A stretch of 64,000 nucleotides of DNA, from NCBI GenBank assembly GCA_002104945.1, contig MCFH01000011.1:372001-436000 (forward strand). The letters are read 5' to 3'. The DNA is from Piromyces finnis finn (Eukaryota > Fungi > Neocallimastigomycota). A program made the position numbers and the translations under genes. The notes under the pieces are model-generated. The model saw only the letters and a program-made list of their open reading frames with translations. It was not told the DNA's origin and searched no databases. This document shows positions 42,351 to 52,784 of the stretch, piece by piece; the first letter of the stretch is position 1, and the number at the start of each line of letters is the position of its first letter.

Positions 42351-42499
42351 TTATTAATTATAATTATTATTTAATCCATTTTATAAAGCGGAAAAATAAT
42401 GAAAAATAATTTTCTATTTTTATTATCCAAAACTTTATTATTTATTTCTACATTATAACTAATTTCATACATTTTGTAATCGTTGTTTGTATATTTTTT

Positions 42500-43049
42500 T
42501 TTTTTTTTAACTTCCGAGTGCATTTCTCCCATCGATCAGAGTTAGCTCCAAGGTGGTTCTTAGAGAAACGTTGGCTCATTCCTATTGCTAGGTGGTTGTG
42601 ACCCTCCTGGTCTGTCATACTGTTTCTTCAGCTTCGACGCTCACTTAATCCATGTACACTAGATGCATGTCGTTGTACGATATTTCACAACTACAATGCT
42701 AAGCCTCTTATAGTCAATTTGATCACGTGTCAACCGCCCCCTAATGTTTACACTTAAATTGATTAAGGAATATTATGTGTTTTTGGCATAGCCTAAGTCA
42801 CCACTTATTAAGTTCTAATTTGGAATGTACCATGTACACTAGACCCTCTCAGGCCGGCTAGACGAGTGTTATTATCATAGTAGTAAATTAGAAAGTTCAT
42901 TTATACTTACCTGAATATCATAACCCAACCCATGGCAAACCCAGTGGGAAAATCCACAGGCACTGACATCTGCGGGGTCGAACCAGAAGCCTTATGTATG
43001 CTAAGGAAACGCCTTAACAACCAGGATAAAAACTGGAACGACATCAGTG
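42500..43049 (-). mobile_element. Candidate tRNA-derived SINE (~550 bp): tRNA-like Pol III head, unique body, LINE-related 3' tail, poly(A)
   Basis: Minus strand: A-box-like TATCCTGGTTGTTAAGGCG, anticodon-like loop TTAGCAT (as in tRNA-Ala AGC), B box GGTTCGACCCC (42984-42974), and an acceptor-like stem CACTGATGTC/GATGTCAGTG. The tail GAGCGTCGAAGCTGAAGAAACAGTATGACAGACCAGGAGGGTC resembles the LINE-1 3' UTR. It ends in an A15 run. Confidence 0.7.
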
Positions 43050-43051
43050 TT

Positions 43052-43761
43052 TGTTAAGGAACCAACAAATAATGTTATTCTTGTCATAATTAATGATTAT
43101 GACCTAATCCATTCATTATTGTTCCTAAATGTATGAAAACTTTACAATATTCTTATTTGTAAATTAATGTATACACTTAAATTATATTTAAAATTATTAA
43201 TAATTATTTTTTATTGAACTTAAATTTTATTTTATTAAACTTAAAAATTAATTTAGTAATAATAATATATTGAAAATTATAGTTTATTGAACTTTTAGTT
43301 TAATTTATCAAGTTAATGAATTTTTATTAATTAAAATTATGAATAATATTTCTGTAAAATAGTAAAATTTTTTAGTTAAATATATTTAAAGTAAACTTTT
43401 AATGTATGTTAATCAATTTAATAATATGTATAAATATTTATTATAATAGTAATGTAATTTTATTATTCATTTAAAAGTAATTTAAATACTAAAATTATGT
43501 AAATAATTAAAGACTAATTCTTTTAATTAACACTACTTAATTTTTTACAAAAAGTATAAAAAGGTGTATATTATAAGAATTAGAGAATATACAGATATTT
43601 TTATTTTTATTTTTATTTTATTTTATAATTTTATATTAATATCTTAATAAAACAATTTTATTAATAAAACAATTTTTCTTATTTCATTTTAATATTATTT
43701 TTGAGTATTAATAAATTTATTAATATTTTATAAATAAAAGTAAATTCCTCGAACCGTAACA
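43052..43761 (+). repeat. 5' LTR (710 bp)
   Basis: TGTTAAGG...CCGTAACA; no mismatch to 50267-50976 was found by eye. Confidence 0.97.
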
Positions 43762-43768
43762 TAAAAAT

Positions 43769-43786
43769 TGGTGGAGATATCGGGGA
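43769..43786 (+). other. Primer-binding site complementary to a tRNA-Ala 3' end
   Basis: TGGTGGAGATATCGGGGA lies 7 nt after the 5' LTR. Eukaryotic tRNA-Ala 3' ends give TGGTGGAGATGCCGGGGA (16/18 match). Confidence 0.8.
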
Positions 43787-44633
43787 ATAATATTAATAAA
43801 AATTATTAATACATAGGATAAAGTAATATTAAAATATTACTAAAATATTATATAAATTTCTTAAAAATTTATTACCCTTCAAAGTTATAGGTAATATTTA
43901 TATTACTGTTGAAGCTTTAAGGTATAATATTTTAGTAGAACTGAATTAGTACGCTTTAGAAGCAGTACTTATTTAGGAATTAGTGGTTAAGTTTTTAGGT
44001 CTAGTTTATCTTTCACAGTAGGATACTGGAAAGCGCTGAACCTTTCTATTTTGCTAGAGAAATAGAAGTGCCTCGCATAATTGCTACATGACACTGGTAA
44101 TACGGTAAGCTGGGCAATTGTGAACTACTTAAGCACCCTAAATAAGTATTGGAAAATTGCTGTGAAATGCTGTTCTACTATACTTATTATTGTAATTCAA
44201 ATTTTTAATAAATTAAATATTATTTTAGTATTTATAATTTTTTAAAAAAAAAAAAATATTTTTTTTTAATTGAACGATTTTTAAAAATTATTCTTTTTAA
44301 AATATAAATAAATAATTCGAAAGTGACCCTTAGCGTGGCAAGTTAAACTGCTGTACGTAATACTTTGGTGTTCAATTATATCTGATAATTGGGGAAGATA
44401 ATCAATTATTTTCTTTCCGCTAATTAAGTTAGTGATAATAAAGAAATTAATTACGTTACTTCCTTTTATTAAATTATATTTAATATTAACCATCGGGTAT
44501 ATTTGTGGCTTATCATCAAAGAGCTACGAGGGATTTTCACTTAGAATTACACAACCTATAATACTTGATGGTTTAACATTATATAGGTTGGCCTATATTT
44601 TTATAAAAAGAAATAAGTTTTTAAATAATAATT

Positions 44634-44688
<55 letters not shown>

Positions 44689-45318
44689 GATATATATATC
44701 TATTCTTTTTGTTGATTCTCTTCGAGTAATTTAATATTGCTAATTGAAATATTCTTTTCTTACTGTTTTAAGTTAAACAAGTTATATCAGCATAGACAAG
44801 CCTTATTAACTAATCAACAGAGGTATACTAGGGGTGGTAGAAAGATCCTGAAGCACGTGACGGAACTTAGATCGTGTGAATAAGGTGACGGCAACATTTA
44901 CCATTGGACGAAAGACTCTTAGTTAATAGTCTATTATATATAATTTGGTCGGTAACTTGAATCAGTAATAACAATATTAAATTAAAATTCTTGCTAGTAA
45001 ATTGAAAACAAATAATAATTAACTATAAGAAAAACAGAAAACAAAAGTAATAATTTCGTCTTTTCTGACTGAACTAAGATAGTAAGGAGTGATACTAAAA
45101 ATTTAAATAAATAATTGGTAGTACGTGCTGTGCTAGATTATTTGTATCTCATTCTGTCAAGTGGTCGATAAAGGAATTTCGAGCTTGGTTACAACTAATA
45201 AGTGGTCGATAAAGGAATTTCGAACTTATAATTTTTTTTTAGACTATCAAAGGTATTTTTGAGTCTATACTGTGTCATCTTGTACTGCAATAAATTCGGT
45301 CAAGGAAAATACAAGAAA

Positions 45319-46200
45319 ATGAGCAATTCTACTACAAGGATAGATTTCAAGGAGTTGAAGAAGGAACTCAAGGATATAGAAAAACTTTCCAAAGATAATT
45401 TGGACATAAGATCCTGGGCTTCTGAAATAAGTTTATGGATTGAACTTCAAGATATCACTAGTGCCAAGAAAATTTACATGGCATGTGTGCTTACTTCTAA
45501 GGGTGAACCAAGAAAGGTAATCCAAGAGTTGGAAGATAAAGACAGTGATAGTGAAGATGAATATGAAAGTGAAAATGAAGAAGAGAATCAGAAAAATGAA
45601 TCTAATGAAGAAGATTATCCCTCACTTGGGAAAATTATCAATGCCCTTGAAACATTTTATGGGTTAAAAGAAGATCAAAGTATGTTATTACGGGAACTAA
45701 GAAGACTACGTATAAGAAGAAATGAATCAGTTAAAGATTTCAATAGAAGATATAGATCTTTATATTTAAAGTTGGATAAGAAAAAGAAGAAGCAGATTAG
45801 TGTGTTAGATTATGCAGATTCTTTACAAAATAATAAAGAAGCATGGAGAAAAGTATCTTTAAAAGATGATATCACTCTAGAAAAGGCCTTTAAGATAGCT
45901 GAGAAGGTAGATAGGTTATCTACTAGAATAGATAATGATGGTAATCTACCAACGACTACTGCAATAACCAAAAGTTATAATAATTTTCAACCATACAAGA
46001 GAAAAGTTTCTTTTACTGAAGCCAAAAAGCCTAATAAAGATGATGAAATGAATAACCTAGTCAAGAAAATGAAAAATTTAACTATTAAAGCTTGTTTCTT
46101 CTGTAGTGAACCTGGTCATTATCAACAAAATTGCCCAAAACTTCAAGCCATTATTGAAGGAAACAAGAAGCGTTATTATGATAATCATTTAAATCATTAA
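45319..46200 (+). CDS. gag: Gag (capsid plus CCHC zinc knuckle)
   Basis: First ATG at 45319 (the ORF-track TTG at 45259 is unlikely). LRELRRLRIRRNESVKDFNRRY is a retrotransposon-gag-like block, and CFFCSEPGHYQQNC is a CX2CX4HX4C knuckle. Confidence 0.93.
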   Translation: MSNSTTRIDFKELKKELKDIEKLSKDNLDIRSWASEISLWIELQDITSAKKIYMACVLTSKGEPRKVIQELEDKDSDSEDEYESENEEENQKNESNEEDYPSLGKIINALETFYGLKEDQSMLLRELRRLRIRRNESVKDFNRRYRSLYLKLDKKKKKQISVLDYADSLQNNKEAWRKVSLKDDITLEKAFKIAEKVDRLSTRIDNDGNLPTTTAITKSYNNFQPYKRKVSFTEAKKPNKDDEMNNLVKKMKNLTIKACFFCSEPGHYQQNCPKLQAIIEGNKKRYYDNHLNH

Positions 46201-46240
46201 GTGGGAGAAGAAGCACTCCCATCGTCAATAAAATAGCTTC
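46188..46240 (+). other. -1 programmed ribosomal frameshift signal (slippery heptamer plus H-type pseudoknot)
   Basis: T TTA AAT at 46188-46194 in gag frame, a 7 nt spacer, stem 1 TGGGAG/CTCCCA and stem 2 GAAGC/GCTTC. The pol frame is -1 relative to gag and open from the heptamer. Confidence 0.8.
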
Positions 46241-46256
46241 AGCTCAGTATCAGTCA

Positions 46257-49200
46257 ATGCCAAGTGAAGAAACAACAAGCCAGAGTGATTGGTCGAAAGA
46301 AGAATATGATGAAGAAATCGAAAGTGACTTTGAAGATACTGATATTAATGAACAGTTCTTTGTATGTGCTAATAAAAGGAAGTTGGATAAAATAAGCAAA
46401 GAACAAGATGGTAATAAAGAAAAACGACTTCACAAAAACTTGAAAAATGATCCTAGACCTATTCTTACACCTGCTCTTAGGAAACGTAAAGCACAAGAAT
46501 TAGAAAATATACCAATAGATGTTTCTCCTAAGCAACTGCATCCTTCTATTATTGCTCAACCGAATATCAGAGAACAAAAACTAAAAGAAAGAAAACTTCG
46601 GGATAAAGAGCGTGCTAGTAGTAGTGAACAAAAGGAAGAAGAAAAGAATGAATTGGCAAGTTCTAATGAAGATCCTATTATTATCGACTATGATGAAGAA
46701 GAAATGTTGTCTGCAATTACAGATAAGAAAGGTGCTAAGGTGGTAGAGAAAGATAACACAAGTGAATCAACCAAATCTACTTCTAATTCAACTCTAAATA
46801 AATTAATGAAAGAGCAAAAGAAAGAAAAACCTGCAGAATCGAAGGTTAAGAAAACTGCTAGAAATATTCAAATGATAGCAGATACGGAAGAATATAATGT
46901 AGTTAAAGATCTTAACGAAACAAAATGCAATATTACTTTTGGTCAATTACTTAACTCGGCTCCAAAGTTACGAACGCAAGTGTCACAAGGTCTTAAACTG
47001 GAAAAGAACAACACAAAAATTGTGGGAGCTCTGGAGAATTTTAATGCTACTTCGGTATTAGTAAATAATGTAGATCATTTGTATGTAAGCAAAAGTAAAG
47101 AAGTATCAGAAGAAGATATCGCTATGGTAGATGCAACGGTTGATGGGGTACCAGGTAAATTATTAGTTGATTCCTGTAGCAACTTAAGTATTATAACAAA
47201 AAAATATTTAGATAAACTTCCCCATCAATATGAATCTATTGGATTGAGTTGTGGAAGAATACGTTTAGCTACTAAAAATGATGACTATTCGGAAGGTATA
47301 ATTATTAGAGTACCGGTCCAGATAAATGATCTTACAATCACTGCTGATTTTAGAGTGGTGGATAAAGAAGACCCCTTTTATGATATGTTAATTAATTTGA
47401 AAACCCAAATGGATAACAACTTATTTATCCACCCACTTCGCTATAGTCTTTGCAGATTTAATTCAAATGGATTTATTGAAGATATTGCTCCAATTAATAA
47501 CAAATATGATGATGAAGAAAAGATTATGTGTATGATACGTAGAGTCGGTGATGAAGATTTTAAAAGTGATTTGAAAAATATTGAAGGTTTACCACCTTCA
47601 GAATATATTCACAATAAAAATTTTACTGAGACTCTTAATGAAAAGTATCGAGAACAAATTGTTCGGATATTGGAAGAGAATATTGAAATTATTGCTACTT
47701 CTTCTGAAGAACTAACACCTTCGAATTTAACTCCCCATAAGATTAATTTAAAGCCAGGAGCAAAGCCAATTAAACAAAGATCATATAGGTTAGCCAAGTT
47801 CAAATCTGATATACTTAAGGAAGAATTGTCTAAATTGATTAATAAAAAGCTAATTGAGCCATCGTACTCGGAATGGTCTTCTCCGGTGGTTTTGGTCCCG
47901 AAGCATAATGGGAAATGGAGAATGTGCGTGGACTATCGAAGAGTTAATGATTTGTCTGAAAAGGATGCCTATTCAATTCCTTTTATAGATGAGATATTTG
48001 ATAGTTTACATGGTGCAACTATATTCACTACTATGGACTTATATTCCGGCTATCATCAAATCCTTATGGATGAAGAAAGCGTTGAATTGACAAGTTTTAC
48101 AACTAAGTTTGGAAATTACCAATTCAAGGTTATGCCTTTTGGTCTCACTGGAGCACCCGCTACATTTCAGAGGGAGATGAATCGGATTCTGTTTCCGTTA
48201 ATTGGAAAGTGTGTTTATAACTTCATTGATGATATTCTGATCTATTCAAAGAGTATTGAAGAACATATTGAACATATAAATCAAGTTTTAGCAATTTTCC
48301 GGGAAAACAAACTAAAAATCAATATTGAAAAATGTCATTTTATGCAAACTGAAGTTGACGTGTTAGGCCATCGTTTAACTACAGAAGGTCTTAAACCATT
48401 AGATAACAAAATCCAAGCTATAAAAAATTGGAAACCTCCTTCGAATATCCATGAATTAAGATCATTCCTAGGTTCAATTGGATATTATAGAGATTTTATT
48501 CCTAATTATGCTAAACTTACTGCTCCCTTGTGTAAGCTGCTTAGAAAAGGTGTTCCTTTCAAATGGTGTAATGAACAACAAGAGAGTTTTATTATATTGA
48601 AAGAAAAGTTAATTAATGCGCCTATTCTGAAATTCCCTGATTTTGAGAAAGAATTTATAATCCGAACAGATGCATCGTATGAAGGAATCGGAGGAGTATT
48701 ATTACAAAAGGAAGGTACCGATATTGAACATCCAATTCATTATATTAGCCGAAGTCTGACGAAAGCAGAAAAAAATTATGGAATTACTGACTTGGAAGGG
48801 ACTGCCTTATTTTACTGCATTACTAAATTAAAGCCTTATATAATGGGAAGTCCATTCAAGACTATCGTCTATACTGATCATAAACCATTAATTGGATTAT
48901 TTAAAAATAAGGAGCCAAACAATGCAAGACAAACAAGATGGTGTTTAACAGCTAGTATGCTAGGAGTTGATATTCGTTATGAACAAGGTAAAAAGAATGT
49001 TGTAGCAGATGCACTGTCTCGAATGAGAAATGACAAAGATAAGGAAGTGTTAGCTACTAAAATTAATAAAGGTATAGAAGAAACCATGCTATCTAAGGTA
49101 ATTAAAGAATTTGTTGAAGAAAAGTTCACCAAAATAGATGGGGTGGATTACTTTATTGATGGAAGGAATTATCGAAAACTGATCACGGAAACCAATGAAA

Positions 49201-50243
49201 AGCTGAAATTGATTTTGGAAGCTCATAACATTGGACATGAAGGATATTATAAAACTTATCAACGTCTGAGAAAAAGCTATTATTGGAACGACATGGTTAA
49301 TGATATTCGAAGAGTTGTAGTCAAATGTGAAAAATGCCAACTTAATCGCCCTCAACCATATCCAGAACCTACGGAAAATCTTCCAACTGAGGTTGAAGCT
49401 CCTTTCACTCATCTGGGTTTAGATATCATTGGTCCATTAGTAAAAACTCGTAACAATAACCAATATATTATAGTTGCAGTGGATCATTTCACAAAATGGG
49501 TCGAAGCAGAACCCACCGAAAATATCACTTCAAAGGATGTCATAAAATTTTTAATCAATGTTTTCTCTCGGCATGGAGTACCACAAGTCATTACAACCGA
49601 TAACGGTGTCCAATTTACCTCAGATATGACCAAAGTTTTCCTGGACTTATATGATGTCTATGTCAAGTTTGTCTCAACTTATCATCCTGAAAGTAATGGT
49701 TTGACTGAAAATAGAAACAAAGAAATTGGAAAGCTTCTAAGACTGCTTGGAAAAGAAAACAAGGATTGGGATGAAATTTTGCCTTCTGCTCTTTGGGCGC
49801 TCAGAACTACTAAAAATACTGTCACAAACCATTCTAGTTTTGAATTGGTTTATGGAAGAGAAGATCAGCAACCCTTTGATATTGCCGCCAGACCTACTAA
49901 GGGTATTAATCAGTCTTCGGATGAAATCTTACTTGAGAAGTTTATTAATCATTACAGGTGGACGTTGGAAGCTTGTGAAAATATTAAAAATGCGAATAAA
50001 TACTGGGCTACTAGAAGGGAAGAAAAACAAAGTATGACTAAGGGCAAAAATATCCATATCGGTGATCTAGTATTAGTTAGAAATTTTAATCGAACGAAGT
50101 TAGAGCCTTATTTCGTTGGACCACTCAAAGTTGTCAAGAAACAATTCAATACTGTTACTTTAGCTGATATATCCACTGGAATTCAGATGAACCGAAATGT
50201 TCATCTTAAGAATATTGTAAAGTTTAACTCTGCTTTTGCGTAA
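46257..50243 (+). CDS. pol: Pol polyprotein (aspartic protease, RT, RNase H, integrase); frame open from 46188
   Basis: PR: LLVDSCSNLSII. RT: WSSPVVLVPK, RMCVDYRRVN, MPFGLTGAPATFQR, FIDDILIYS. RH: TDAS, DHKPL, NVVADALSR. IN: HHCC finger, LGLDIIG, TDNGVQF, NGLTENRNK, FVGPL. No chromodomain. Confidence 0.97.
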   Translation: MPSEETTSQSDWSKEEYDEEIESDFEDTDINEQFFVCANKRKLDKISKEQDGNKEKRLHKNLKNDPRPILTPALRKRKAQELENIPIDVSPKQLHPSIIAQPNIREQKLKERKLRDKERASSSEQKEEEKNELASSNEDPIIIDYDEEEMLSAITDKKGAKVVEKDNTSESTKSTSNSTLNKLMKEQKKEKPAESKVKKTARNIQMIADTEEYNVVKDLNETKCNITFGQLLNSAPKLRTQVSQGLKLEKNNTKIVGALENFNATSVLVNNVDHLYVSKSKEVSEEDIAMVDATVDGVPGKLLVDSCSNLSIITKKYLDKLPHQYESIGLSCGRIRLATKNDDYSEGIIIRVPVQINDLTITADFRVVDKEDPFYDMLINLKTQMDNNLFIHPLRYSLCRFNSNGFIEDIAPINNKYDDEEKIMCMIRRVGDEDFKSDLKNIEGLPPSEYIHNKNFTETLNEKYREQIVRILEENIEIIATSSEELTPSNLTPHKINLKPGAKPIKQRSYRLAKFKSDILKEELSKLINKKLIEPSYSEWSSPVVLVPKHNGKWRMCVDYRRVNDLSEKDAYSIPFIDEIFDSLHGATIFTTMDLYSGYHQILMDEESVELTSFTTKFGNYQFKVMPFGLTGAPATFQREMNRILFPLIGKCVYNFIDDILIYSKSIEEHIEHINQVLAIFRENKLKINIEKCHFMQTEVDVLGHRLTTEGLKPLDNKIQAIKNWKPPSNIHELRSFLGSIGYYRDFIPNYAKLTAPLCKLLRKGVPFKWCNEQQESFIILKEKLINAPILKFPDFEKEFIIRTDASYEGIGGVLLQKEGTDIEHPIHYISRSLTKAEKNYGITDLEGTALFYCITKLKPYIMGSPFKTIVYTDHKPLIGLFKNKEPNNARQTRWCLTASMLGVDIRYEQGKKNVVADALSRMRNDKDKEVLATKINKGIEETMLSKVIKEFVEEKFTKIDGVDYFIDGRNYRKLITETNEKLKLILEAHNIGHEGYYKTYQRLRKSYYWNDMVNDIRRVVVKCEKCQLNRPQPYPEPTENLPTEVEAPFTHLGLDIIGPLVKTRNNNQYIIVAVDHFTKWVEAEPTENITSKDVIKFLINVFSRHGVPQVITTDNGVQFTSDMTKVFLDLYDVYVKFVSTYHPESNGLTENRNKEIGKLLRLLGKENKDWDEILPSALWALRTTKNTVTNHSSFELVYGREDQQPFDIAARPTKGINQSSDEILLEKFINHYRWTLEACENIKNANKYWATRREEKQSMTKGKNIHIGDLVLVRNFNRTKLEPYFVGPLKVVKKQFNTVTLADISTGIQMNRNVHLKNIVKFNSAFA

Positions 50244-50266
50244 GCAAGAGTCTTCGTGGGGGCACT

Positions 50267-50976
50267 TGTTAAGGAACCAACAAATAATGTTATTCTTGTC
50301 ATAATTAATGATTATGACCTAATCCATTCATTATTGTTCCTAAATGTATGAAAACTTTACAATATTCTTATTTGTAAATTAATGTATACACTTAAATTAT
50401 ATTTAAAATTATTAATAATTATTTTTTATTGAACTTAAATTTTATTTTATTAAACTTAAAAATTAATTTAGTAATAATAATATATTGAAAATTATAGTTT
50501 ATTGAACTTTTAGTTTAATTTATCAAGTTAATGAATTTTTATTAATTAAAATTATGAATAATATTTCTGTAAAATAGTAAAATTTTTTAGTTAAATATAT
50601 TTAAAGTAAACTTTTAATGTATGTTAATCAATTTAATAATATGTATAAATATTTATTATAATAGTAATGTAATTTTATTATTCATTTAAAAGTAATTTAA
50701 ATACTAAAATTATGTAAATAATTAAAGACTAATTCTTTTAATTAACACTACTTAATTTTTTACAAAAAGTATAAAAAGGTGTATATTATAAGAATTAGAG
50801 AATATACAGATATTTTTATTTTTATTTTTATTTTATTTTATAATTTTATATTAATATCTTAATAAAACAATTTTATTAATAAAACAATTTTTCTTATTTC
50901 ATTTTAATATTATTTTTGAGTATTAATAAATTTATTAATATTTTATAAATAAAAGTAAATTCCTCGAACCGTAACA
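50267..50976 (+). repeat. 3' LTR (710 bp), preceded by a short G-rich PPT-like tract (GTGGGGG)
   Basis: Same length and termini as the 5' LTR. Confidence 0.97.
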
Positions 50977-52784
50977 TGTTTCAAATATAAATTCGTGTTA
51001 CATTTTAATGATGAATATTATCAGTAATTTATATATCGAAATTTACTTTGATATTAAATCTCATTTTTATAACAAAAGTATTATGATATTAAATGTTTTT
51101 TTATTATGTTTATTATTTATAATAATAACACCAAAAAATATTTTTTAATAATATTTGATAATAATATATAAAATAATGAAAAGCATTTGTTTTGGTTTTG
51201 CTTTTTAAATAAAAAATGTTTTTATTTTTTTAGCATTTAAGGTTAATTCAATTAATTTGCTTTAGTACATTTATTCACCTAAAGTGCAAATCATTAATTT
51301 AATTAAAATAAAATTATCGTTTTTATTAAACTTTATTTTTATAATATTTCAATGAATAGAGTTGGTTTTAATGATTCAATTTGAATAATAGTACAAGAAT
51401 TTATTAATTTGTTTAATATTTATGTTTATATTCATATATTAAGCATTCCAAAAATGAAAATTTACGGTAAAAAGCATTTAGTGAAAAAAAATTTTTATTA
51501 CATATATAGGGGTATTCCCATAAAATTACTATTACTACTTATAATAGAGTCAAAATAGAAAAAATAAAAGTAAATAATATCTTAATAATACTATAATACA
51601 TGATTAATATTCATCGTTAGTGTTAAACTACTAATAAAACATTTATTACTATTTTAATTAGTTTATTCTCATTAAAAAAGTTAGCTTTTTATATATATTA
51701 TAGAAGATGGATTAAATACAATAAATTTTGTGAATTTTAATATATTATAATATTTAATGTTAATATATATGTACTACAAGACCAACTTTAATAGTTATAA
51801 AAAATTAAAAAAAAATATTTTTTTGAATAATTAAAAACCTTAATTAATATAAAAAATAAATTTGTTTAAAATTTGTTGACAGTTACCAAAAATAATGAAT
51901 AAACTTATCAAATATTTTTATTTAATTTTAAATAAAAATAATTTATTCACAACAATATAATTTAATAAATGGAAAAATAATTGAATATATAATATTACAA
52001 TACTATAATATTTATTTTATTTTTATCCTAGTATTATATATTAAATATTATATATTTTTATTAATAACTATATTAAATTTGTATATTTTTTTTTTTAAAA
52101 TACAATAATTTTTATATATATAAGGAAAAAAGAACTTTTTTTTTATCACTAAAAATATACAATATATTTTTTTTATAATATCTTTTAAAAAATATTATAT
52201 AACTAAAAAAAAGTATTAAAAAAAATGCTCAATATTGATTATTGAGTAAAATTCAAAACATACTAAAAATGATATTAATATAATTGTATTATTATAAAAT
52301 ATATTTATAAAAGAAAATAAAATGAATTAGATAAAAAATAAAATTTAAATCAAAAGTCATATTGAAGTTAACCAAAATTAAACATTTCAATAAAAACTCT
52401 ATTATAATTTTTAATAAGAATATCTAATAAAAACAATATTATAAATTTAGTATTGTTATATACTTTAAGAAATTTTAATTTTCTAAATTAATAGAAAAAT
52501 TAAATAATTTATCTAGTATTAGTATAGATTATAGTAAGATTTATATATATTTTATTTATTAGAAATTAAGGAAATTTTATTTAATTACTAAAAGTCATTA
52601 AAGTAATTAAAATATATATAATATAATAAATAGAAATTCTATAATTCTTATTGTAAATATTTATATTTATTTTAAAATAAAACTTTTTTTTTTAAAAAAA
52701 AATATATTTGTAATATACACATAATAAACAAAAAAAAAAAAAAAAAAGAAAAATACATTTTATATAATAATAATAATAATAAAA

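Follow-up and report, generated by a model that had tools for sequence, protein, structure and literature searches.

What sets the address of a retrotransposon that has inserted a few nucleotides from the head of a tRNA-derived repeat? The question is raised by a 64,000-nucleotide stretch of the Piromyces finnis genome (contig MCFH01000011.1, positions 372,001 to 436,000; hereafter the window). Here a retrotransposon with long terminal repeats (LTRs), spanning positions 43052-50976, faces a short interspersed element (SINE) of the minus strand, which we call SINE1. The two lie head-to-head, as the original prediction had stated: the B box of the SINE (GGTTCGACCCC) is found at 42974-42984 and its A-tail near 42494. 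Integration directed to genes that RNA polymerase III (Pol III) transcribes is the textbook case of a retroelement picking a harmless address, and it was in these terms that the locus had been interpreted. A lack of enrichment of the family upstream of Pol III promoters had been named beforehand as the outcome that would refute this reading, and a genome-wide survey of the family's flanks revealed strong enrichment. We conclude that a family of Ty3/gypsy-class elements very probably directs its integration to the transcription-start region of Pol III genes.

When the genome was searched with the LTR, at least 40 near-identical copies came up. Its first 29 nucleotides (nt) alone gave 112 starts, against none for a reversed-pattern control, and both flanks were taken for 100 of these. 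Twenty-eight of the 100 copies were recognized as 3' LTRs by the polypurine tract upstream of them and one more was a diverged 3' LTR; the remaining 71 yielded 62 distinct 5'-side flanks, duplicate loci with identical flanks being merged before counting. No fewer than 27 of the 62 adjoin the head of a Pol III-type gene, within an interval a few nt wide. The random expectation is 0.005 flanks or less out of 62, even if the genome is credited with 3,000 targets, and a control sequence of about 170 kb, made up of 30 SINE loci and the window, contained no tRNA detectable by ARAGORN. Chance is excluded by this genome-wide result.

At 14 of the 62 flanks, the adjoining unit is a tRNA gene called by ARAGORN on the strand opposite to the element. 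Nine anticodon types are represented among them (Trp twice, Ser-GCU, Ser-UGA, Ala-UGC twice, Cys three times, Gly-GCC, Gly-UCC, Arg-UCU twice and Leu-UAG). When corrected for the occasional extra end base in the ARAGORN calls (ends ±1), the first position of the tRNA, counted from the LTR edge, falls on the 15th nt in five genes, the 16th in six and the 17th in three; in other words, 14-16 nt separate the LTR edge from the mature tRNA 5' end. The distance from the LTR edge to the start of the B box, which was delimited by a pattern of our own definition, is 64-71 nt, or 76-78 nt in the Ser and Leu tRNAs with a long variable arm. These distances come from the surveyed flanks; a genome search with the Rfam tRNA model RF00005 scored 63 of about 2,900 candidates, a sample too incomplete for a full distance distribution. 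The orientation of the insertions is just as strict. No tRNA gene was found in the 3'-side flanks, and the count of 27 to 0 indicates that orientation is fixed and divergent.

A perfect 4-nt duplication is present at 20 of the 22 full-length pairs and likewise at 31 of the 38 solo LTRs, and its sequence varies from copy to copy (TGTT, AAAT, GTGT, ATTT, AGAG, GATT, ATTC, AGCA, CAAT, AATA, TTTG, TCAA and others). Because the duplications differ, the target is not a sequence motif, and this candidate was ruled out. The idea that targets are chosen for their homology with the tRNA that primes the element was discarded as well, on account of the range of anticodons among the targets. The two LTRs are identical in 11 of 13 full-length copies, from which it follows that the family has been active recently.

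Could the same picture arise without any targeting? Integration might be random, or merely biased by region, and purifying selection might then leave survivors at harmless spots next to tRNA genes. The survey deals with genomic copies only, and tRNA genes and LTRs do share contigs (contig C176 is an example), making regional accumulation in gene-poor, tRNA-rich DNA plausible. However, selection could not produce an interval three nt wide, the 15th to the 17th, at 14 tRNA genes, nor a constant distance to the B box. The copies with identical LTRs, which have been least exposed to selection, are already found at Pol III sites, and AT-rich intergenic DNA is abundant in the window, yet the family is seldom found alone in such DNA. 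We regard an origin by survivor selection as very improbable.

A second way to generate many similar junctions from few events would be the spread of one ancestral unit, composed of a tRNA gene and an LTR, by segmental duplication or through redundancy of the assembly, in which case the junctions would not be independent. Identical flanks on both sides do occur, in the groups C36/C20/C151, C45/C181, C136/C188 and C51/C152, and several of these copies lie on small contigs. Against this, 27 junctions are left after merging; they involve nine anticodon types, the SINE and other units, and they differ in their duplications and distal flanks. Furthermore, the four insertions at SINE heads described below differ from one another in both offset and duplication. 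The single-unit explanation deserves hardly any credence. As to the groups themselves, the same junctions recur on a small and a large contig (C36 and C20 versus C151, C45 versus C181, C136 versus C188, C51 versus C152), and these duplicates are probably haplotigs or redundant assemblies of repeat-rich regions.

The window insertion belongs to a smaller class, in which the neighbor is a SINE1 head. Four independent heads are adjoined by the family, namely those in the window and at C197, C167 and C14, with gaps of 9, 8, 6 and 11 nt, respectively, and with duplications that are all different. Alignment of 30 SINE1 copies, whose own target duplications end just before it, places the 5' boundary of the SINE (GTCGTTCC) at position 43042. 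The left duplication of the LTR element (TGTT, 43048-43051) is therefore 6-9 nt upstream of the SINE, where it had been thought to overlap the SINE head, and the extra acceptor-stem pairing attributed to the window copy turns out to be flanking DNA. Likewise, the insertion had been placed at the start site itself, whereas 6-11 nt separate the SINE 5' end from the LTR edge, which lies on its upstream side. The distance of 20 nt reported between the duplication and position 43028 is arithmetically right, and position 43028 corresponds to tRNA position 8 in the alignment of the SINE with tRNA-Ala. That alignment carries an offset of +7, by which SINE position 15 (43028) equals tRNA position 8 and SINE position 1 equals tRNA position -7. 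Transfer RNA position 8 is where the A box starts. Expressed on the same scale, the SINE-head insertions fall at tRNA positions -14 to -19 and so bracket the -15 to -17 of the real tRNA genes.

At these loci one may ask which element came first. A SINE or a tRNA gene could have arrived beside a pre-existing LTR, for instance if SINEs retroposed into LTR edges, and at the window locus the order of events cannot be read directly, since the SINE lacks a recognizable duplication of its own. The C197 locus is informative in this respect: the 11-nt duplication of the SINE (TCACTCTAAGT) is split there by the LTR insertion, its upstream copy being interrupted, and the LTR therefore came after the SINE. 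Other observations point the same way. Transfer RNA genes do not retropose; in the window, nothing but the LTR element is enclosed by the perfect TGTT duplication; and among 30 sampled SINE loci an LTR lies directly upstream of the head at only two, both of them occupied by this family. Late arrival of the SINE or tRNA gene is thus exceedingly unlikely. The window SINE1 is 99-100% identical to other copies and, unlike most of the 30 inspected, has no recognizable target duplication, although one was looked for.

What the SINE1 head shares with a tRNA gene is its internal promoter. The window copy extends on the minus strand from 43042, its 5' end, to an A-tail ending near 42494 (about 550 bp). 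Its B box matches perfectly when read directly and, by our pattern, starts at nt 69 from the LTR edge, inside the 65-70 range of class I tRNA genes. The A-box-like motif (TATCCTGGTTG; 43018-43028, minus strand) agrees at six of nine specified positions with the consensus used for scoring, TRGCNNAGTGG. Neither ARAGORN nor Rfam calls the head a tRNA. Compared with 12 tRNAs recovered from the genome, the head matches tRNA-Ala best, in agreement with the resemblance originally proposed; the local score is 40, whereas shuffled sequences score 22.8 ± 3.4 and reach 38 at most. The whole element returned 879 first-look candidates, including 39 other near-full-length copies at 99-100% identity, and the intact 33-nt head occurs 205 times in the genome. 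Only four of these 205 heads carry an element of the family. The notion that SINEs serve as landing pads is thus borne out in that four heads have been hit, but the main targets are tRNA genes. A functional three-way system of LTR element, SINE and long interspersed element (LINE), also suggested at the outset, finds nothing in its favor beyond the Pol III promoter of the SINE.

The remaining nine of the 27 flanks adjoin other tRNA-like units, each of which shows a B-box-like motif at the corresponding distance; seven belong to two types, tL-A and tL-B, and two are single. Units of tL-A and tL-B combine an A-box-like motif (TAGTGGTTAG or TAATGGTTAG) with a B-box-like motif, followed in most cases by a T-run. 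The tL-A loci are L009, L020, L063, L085 and L114, the tL-B loci are L078, L083, L086 and L113, and further units occur at L030, L119 and L116. These units are defined solely by their box motifs and T-runs; they are not called as tRNAs by ARAGORN, nor by Rfam where it was run. They are probably bound by Pol III factors nonetheless, because the family uses them as targets exactly like tRNA genes. The units are about 75-80 nt long and repeated, and copies of tL-A and tL-B also have conserved sequence upstream.

What of the copies that do not touch a Pol III gene? In most of these, the TG terminus of another LTR family follows at a spacing of exactly 4 nt. Of 54 distinct flanks on the 3' side, 39 open with the TG of a different LTR right behind the duplication, among them seven in which the TG overlaps it by 1 nt. 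Such junctions indicate repeated insertion at one site. The locus L062 allows the sequence to be followed in full: a SINE1 head is succeeded by CTT, ATAT, an LTR of about 620 bp from another family, ATAT, a solo LTR of our family, and ATAT again. One could envision each new element settling between the Pol III gene and its predecessor and re-duplicating the same 4 nt. At least 10 other LTR-like families adjoin the family's LTRs in this manner in the 3' flanks of L001-L030 and L061-L189, their abutting termini reading TGATAAATAATG..., TGATACGCTACTCAC..., TGATAACGGATTGG..., TGATACAAGATGC..., TGTTAAGGAATGAAC..., TGTAATAATTCC... and others (examples are L003, L008, L012, L016, L061 and L067), and several of these families are found in both relative orientations. 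This suggests that a guild of elements uses the same Pol III-proximal site, and the tRNA-proximal DNA of this genome appears to consist largely of stacked LTRs.

Position, orientation, indifference to target sequence, breadth of targets and recency are matters of observation; how the element finds its site must be pieced together from them. The site is set by distance from the internal promoter, at any gene with A and B boxes of the tRNA type. In the mechanism that we favor, TFIIIC bound to the B box would hold TFIIIB a set distance upstream, and the intasome would dock against TFIIIB, as Pol III biology and the Ty3 structure (PMC8632968) lead one to expect. The cDNA is joined with a 4-bp stagger, its LTR edge landing 14-16 nt upstream of the mature tRNA 5' end; on the SINE, this corresponds to a point 6-11 nt upstream of the 5' end, at which Pol III presumably starts. 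It is always the 5' LTR that lies beside the Pol III gene, with the two transcribed divergently. The window copy would have used a SINE head because the internal A/B-box promoter of the latter is laid out with the geometry found in a tRNA gene. By analogy with Ty3, we consider TFIIIB the probable tether, with less confidence than we attach to the targeting itself.

The structure of the integrase bears directly on this point. The pol open reading frame (ORF) ends 38 residues past a GPY/F-like motif, 'YFVGPL', and Pfam detects no chromodomain in pol even at E ≤ 10, as anticipated from the first reading of the sequence. The integrase is collinear with residues 1268-1444 of Ty3 Gag-Pol and stops five residues later; Ty3 runs on to residue 1547. 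Relatives on five metagenome contigs (L190-L194) show 78-86% amino-acid identity over reverse transcriptase, RNase H and integrase, and in every one of them pol terminates near the same position. The short C-terminus is thus a family trait rather than a truncation. Judging from these sequences, the family seems to be present across related organisms. Three of the five (L191, L193 and L194) share the tRNA-Ala primer site; all five contigs end inside LTRs, lack flanks, and are uninformative on targeting. Since the integrase stops at the end of its C-terminal domain, the contact should be other than the Brf1-binding chromodomain of Ty3. Candidates would include a loop of the C-terminal domain, the linker, Gag, the N-terminal part of Pol, or a different partner altogether.

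A different partner would mean that the targeting is real and the tether is not TFIIIB: integrase or Gag might bind a Pol III subunit or TFIIIC, or might recognize the melted or bent DNA of initiation. The missing chromodomain, which in Ty3 staples the intasome to Brf1 (PMC8632968), speaks for such an arrangement, as does the fact that the chromodomain-less DGLT-A element of Dictyostelium reaches a similar position (PMC5006619). Fixed orientation implies an asymmetric contact, and possibly any asymmetric part of the complex would do. A model for a tether of this kind is provided by Ty1, whose integrase binds the Pol III subunit AC40; however, tethering of the AC40 type spreads insertions broadly, over as much as about 1 kb, instead of confining them to a single site (PMC5911963). 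A tether other than TFIIIB is on balance unlikely, though it deserves more serious consideration than the alternatives to targeting discussed above.

Several points count against targeting of Pol III start regions by way of TFIIIB. About 35 of the 62 flanks are not directly beside a Pol III gene, and the explanation by stacking is verified at L062 only; at four loci for which 1.5-kb flanks were inspected, there is no Pol III gene within 1.5 kb. No insertion was seen beside a 5S or U6 gene: Rfam (E ≤ 1), run on 13 flanking loci, found no tRNA, 5S, U6 or other Pol III RNA in them. The insertions seen in the genome are survivors, and selection could have sharpened the pattern, the orientation bias above all. 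The placement upstream of the start depends on equating the SINE 5' end with the Pol III start. Finally, the integrase is devoid of the domain that positions Ty3 on Brf1 (PMC8632968), and the TFIIIB tether is suggested by analogy only.

How does the family compare with the retrotransposons known to target Pol III genes? The table of a 2018 review (PMC5911963) lists integration directed to Pol III genes only for ascomycete yeasts and dictyostelid amoebae, and the comparison class comprises Ty3, Tj1, Tca8, Tyl3/Ylt1/Tyl6 and DGLT-A. Full-text literature searches returned nothing relevant on tRNA-gene targeting in anaerobic fungi, Piromyces or chytrids. The closest in behavior, compared by its published description, is DGLT-A, which inserts upstream of tRNA genes, about 13-16 bp from the coding region, and has a 32-residue extension after GPY/F and no chromodomain (PMC5006619). 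It thus shares with the present family a similar upstream distance, an integrase lacking a chromodomain, a short extension beyond GPY/F (32 residues versus 38 here) and many solo LTRs at tRNA genes. DGLT-A differs in that it inserts in either orientation (PMC5911963), as opposed to the exclusively divergent insertions seen here, and in having a single gag-pol ORF and an amoebozoan host, whereas the Piromyces element uses two frames with a 16-nt overlap in a fungal host.

Insertions of Ty3 fall 1-4 bp from the start site and depend on its vestigial chromodomain (integrase residues 446-511), which binds Brf1 and target DNA (PMC8632968, PMC5911963). The two elements have the same order of domains, an integrase collinear through the C-terminal domain, and insertions just upstream of Pol III genes. 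They part in that the integrase of the Piromyces family ends before the chromodomain and that its LTR edge, measured at SINE heads, would lie 6-11 nt upstream of the presumed start, the SINE 5' end, compared with 1-4 bp for Ty3; its orientation, moreover, is fixed. Duplication lengths also differ, being 5 bp in Ty3 and 4 bp in the family described here.

Fixed orientation has a precedent in Tj1 of Schizosaccharomyces japonicus, described in 2015 as unique in this respect among wild-type LTR elements; Tj1 is inserted with the tRNA gene's own orientation (PMC4600332), opposite to the divergent orientation found here. Tj1 also clusters with tRNA genes in S. japonicus, as do some copies of the Piromyces family. 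It differs by its 5-bp duplication, its 244-bp LTRs and its length of 5 kb, as against 4 bp, 710 bp and 7.9 kb, and by hitting 5S genes too (PMC4600332), at which we saw no insertion. Lastly, the family resembles chromoviruses such as MAGGY and Tf1 in its gypsy-class pol and the GPY/F module of its integrase, but it has no detectable chromodomain and targets Pol III genes rather than heterochromatin or Pol II promoters.

In summary of these comparisons, the family is new and its kind of targeting is already known; what sets it apart is the fixed divergent orientation and the fact that it targets without any chromodomain. Safe-site targeting in the style of Ty3 is thereby extended beyond the ascomycete yeasts of the 2018 review (PMC5911963). 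Young, high in copy number and precise to a single site, the family of this anaerobic gut fungus provides a new data point on whether the trait is ancient in fungi or has been repeatedly reinvented, as well as a natural comparison for the Ty3 structure, the same address being reached without the Brf1-binding chromodomain. In practical terms, an insertion at a SINE head may serve as a marker, suggesting that the head was bound by Pol III factors. It is tempting to combine all of these elements into one account. Pol III targeting might have evolved independently in early-diverging fungi; a chromodomain-less integrase would dock asymmetrically, hence the fixed divergent orientation; and a guild of unrelated LTR elements would share the site to the nucleotide, their stacks making tRNA genes and active SINE heads the main retroelement sinks of the genome. 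As a whole, this account must be considered tentative, and somewhat doubtful in its entirety.

The element in the window is a complete gypsy-class (Ty3/gypsy, Metaviridae) LTR retrotransposon of 7,925 bp, set in AT-rich DNA (12-35% G+C per kb). Its 710-bp direct repeats (43052-43761 and 50267-50976, plus strand) are 100% identical and have TG...CA ends, and TGTT flanks the element at 43048-43051 and at 50977-50980, where it adjoins the 3' LTR. The copy is apparently young and intact. LTR-to-LTR spacing among family copies ranges from 7,188 to 7,217 bp. The primer binding site (TGGTGGAGATATCGGGGA, 43769-43786) begins 7 nt past the 5' LTR and is complementary at 18 of 18 nt to the 3' end, including CCA, of tRNA-Ala(UGC) from the same genome (L004 and L095), as expected from the proposed priming on tRNA-Ala. 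The gag ORF, with a CCHC zinc knuckle, occupies 45319-46200 from its first ATG and is open from 45259. The pol frame (46185-50243) is the -1 frame and shares 16 nt with the end of gag; its first ATG is at 46257, and the ORF of 1,328 residues counted from there encodes reverse transcriptase, RNase H and an integrase with zinc-binding, catalytic core and SH3-like C-terminal domains. Pfam places RVT_1 at residues 547-707, RT_RNaseH at 795-898, Integrase_H2C2 at 980-1032 and rve at 1048-1144, with integrase last. Pfam called no protease domain in pol, where a DSC motif was seen by eye only. The top relative of known structure is Ty3 Gag-Pol (7q5b, E = 4e-102). The polypurine-tract region (...GTGGGGGCAC; 50248-50265) is just 5' of the 3' LTR, and the G-rich tract GTGGGGGCAC is present upstream of all 28 3' LTRs recognized genome-wide.

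A few further features of the element and its surroundings merit mention. The leader between the primer binding site and gag is unusually long (about 1.5 kb) and contains an unbroken run of 47 A residues (44637-44683). High-scoring tRNA genes and LTRs of the family are concentrated together on contigs C176, C184, C190 and C4; on C176 at least nine tRNA genes are listed along with eight LTR starts, an arrangement that recalls the tRNA/retrotransposon clusters at S. japonicus centromeres. In the window, the sequence TCAAATATAAATTCGTGTTACA (50981-51002), which follows the right-hand duplication without a gap, resembles the last 20 nt or so of the family LTR (...AAATTCCTCGAACCGTAACA), and similar strings are found in the 3' flanks of L124 and L087. 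This sequence may be what is left of an earlier, related insertion at this SINE head.

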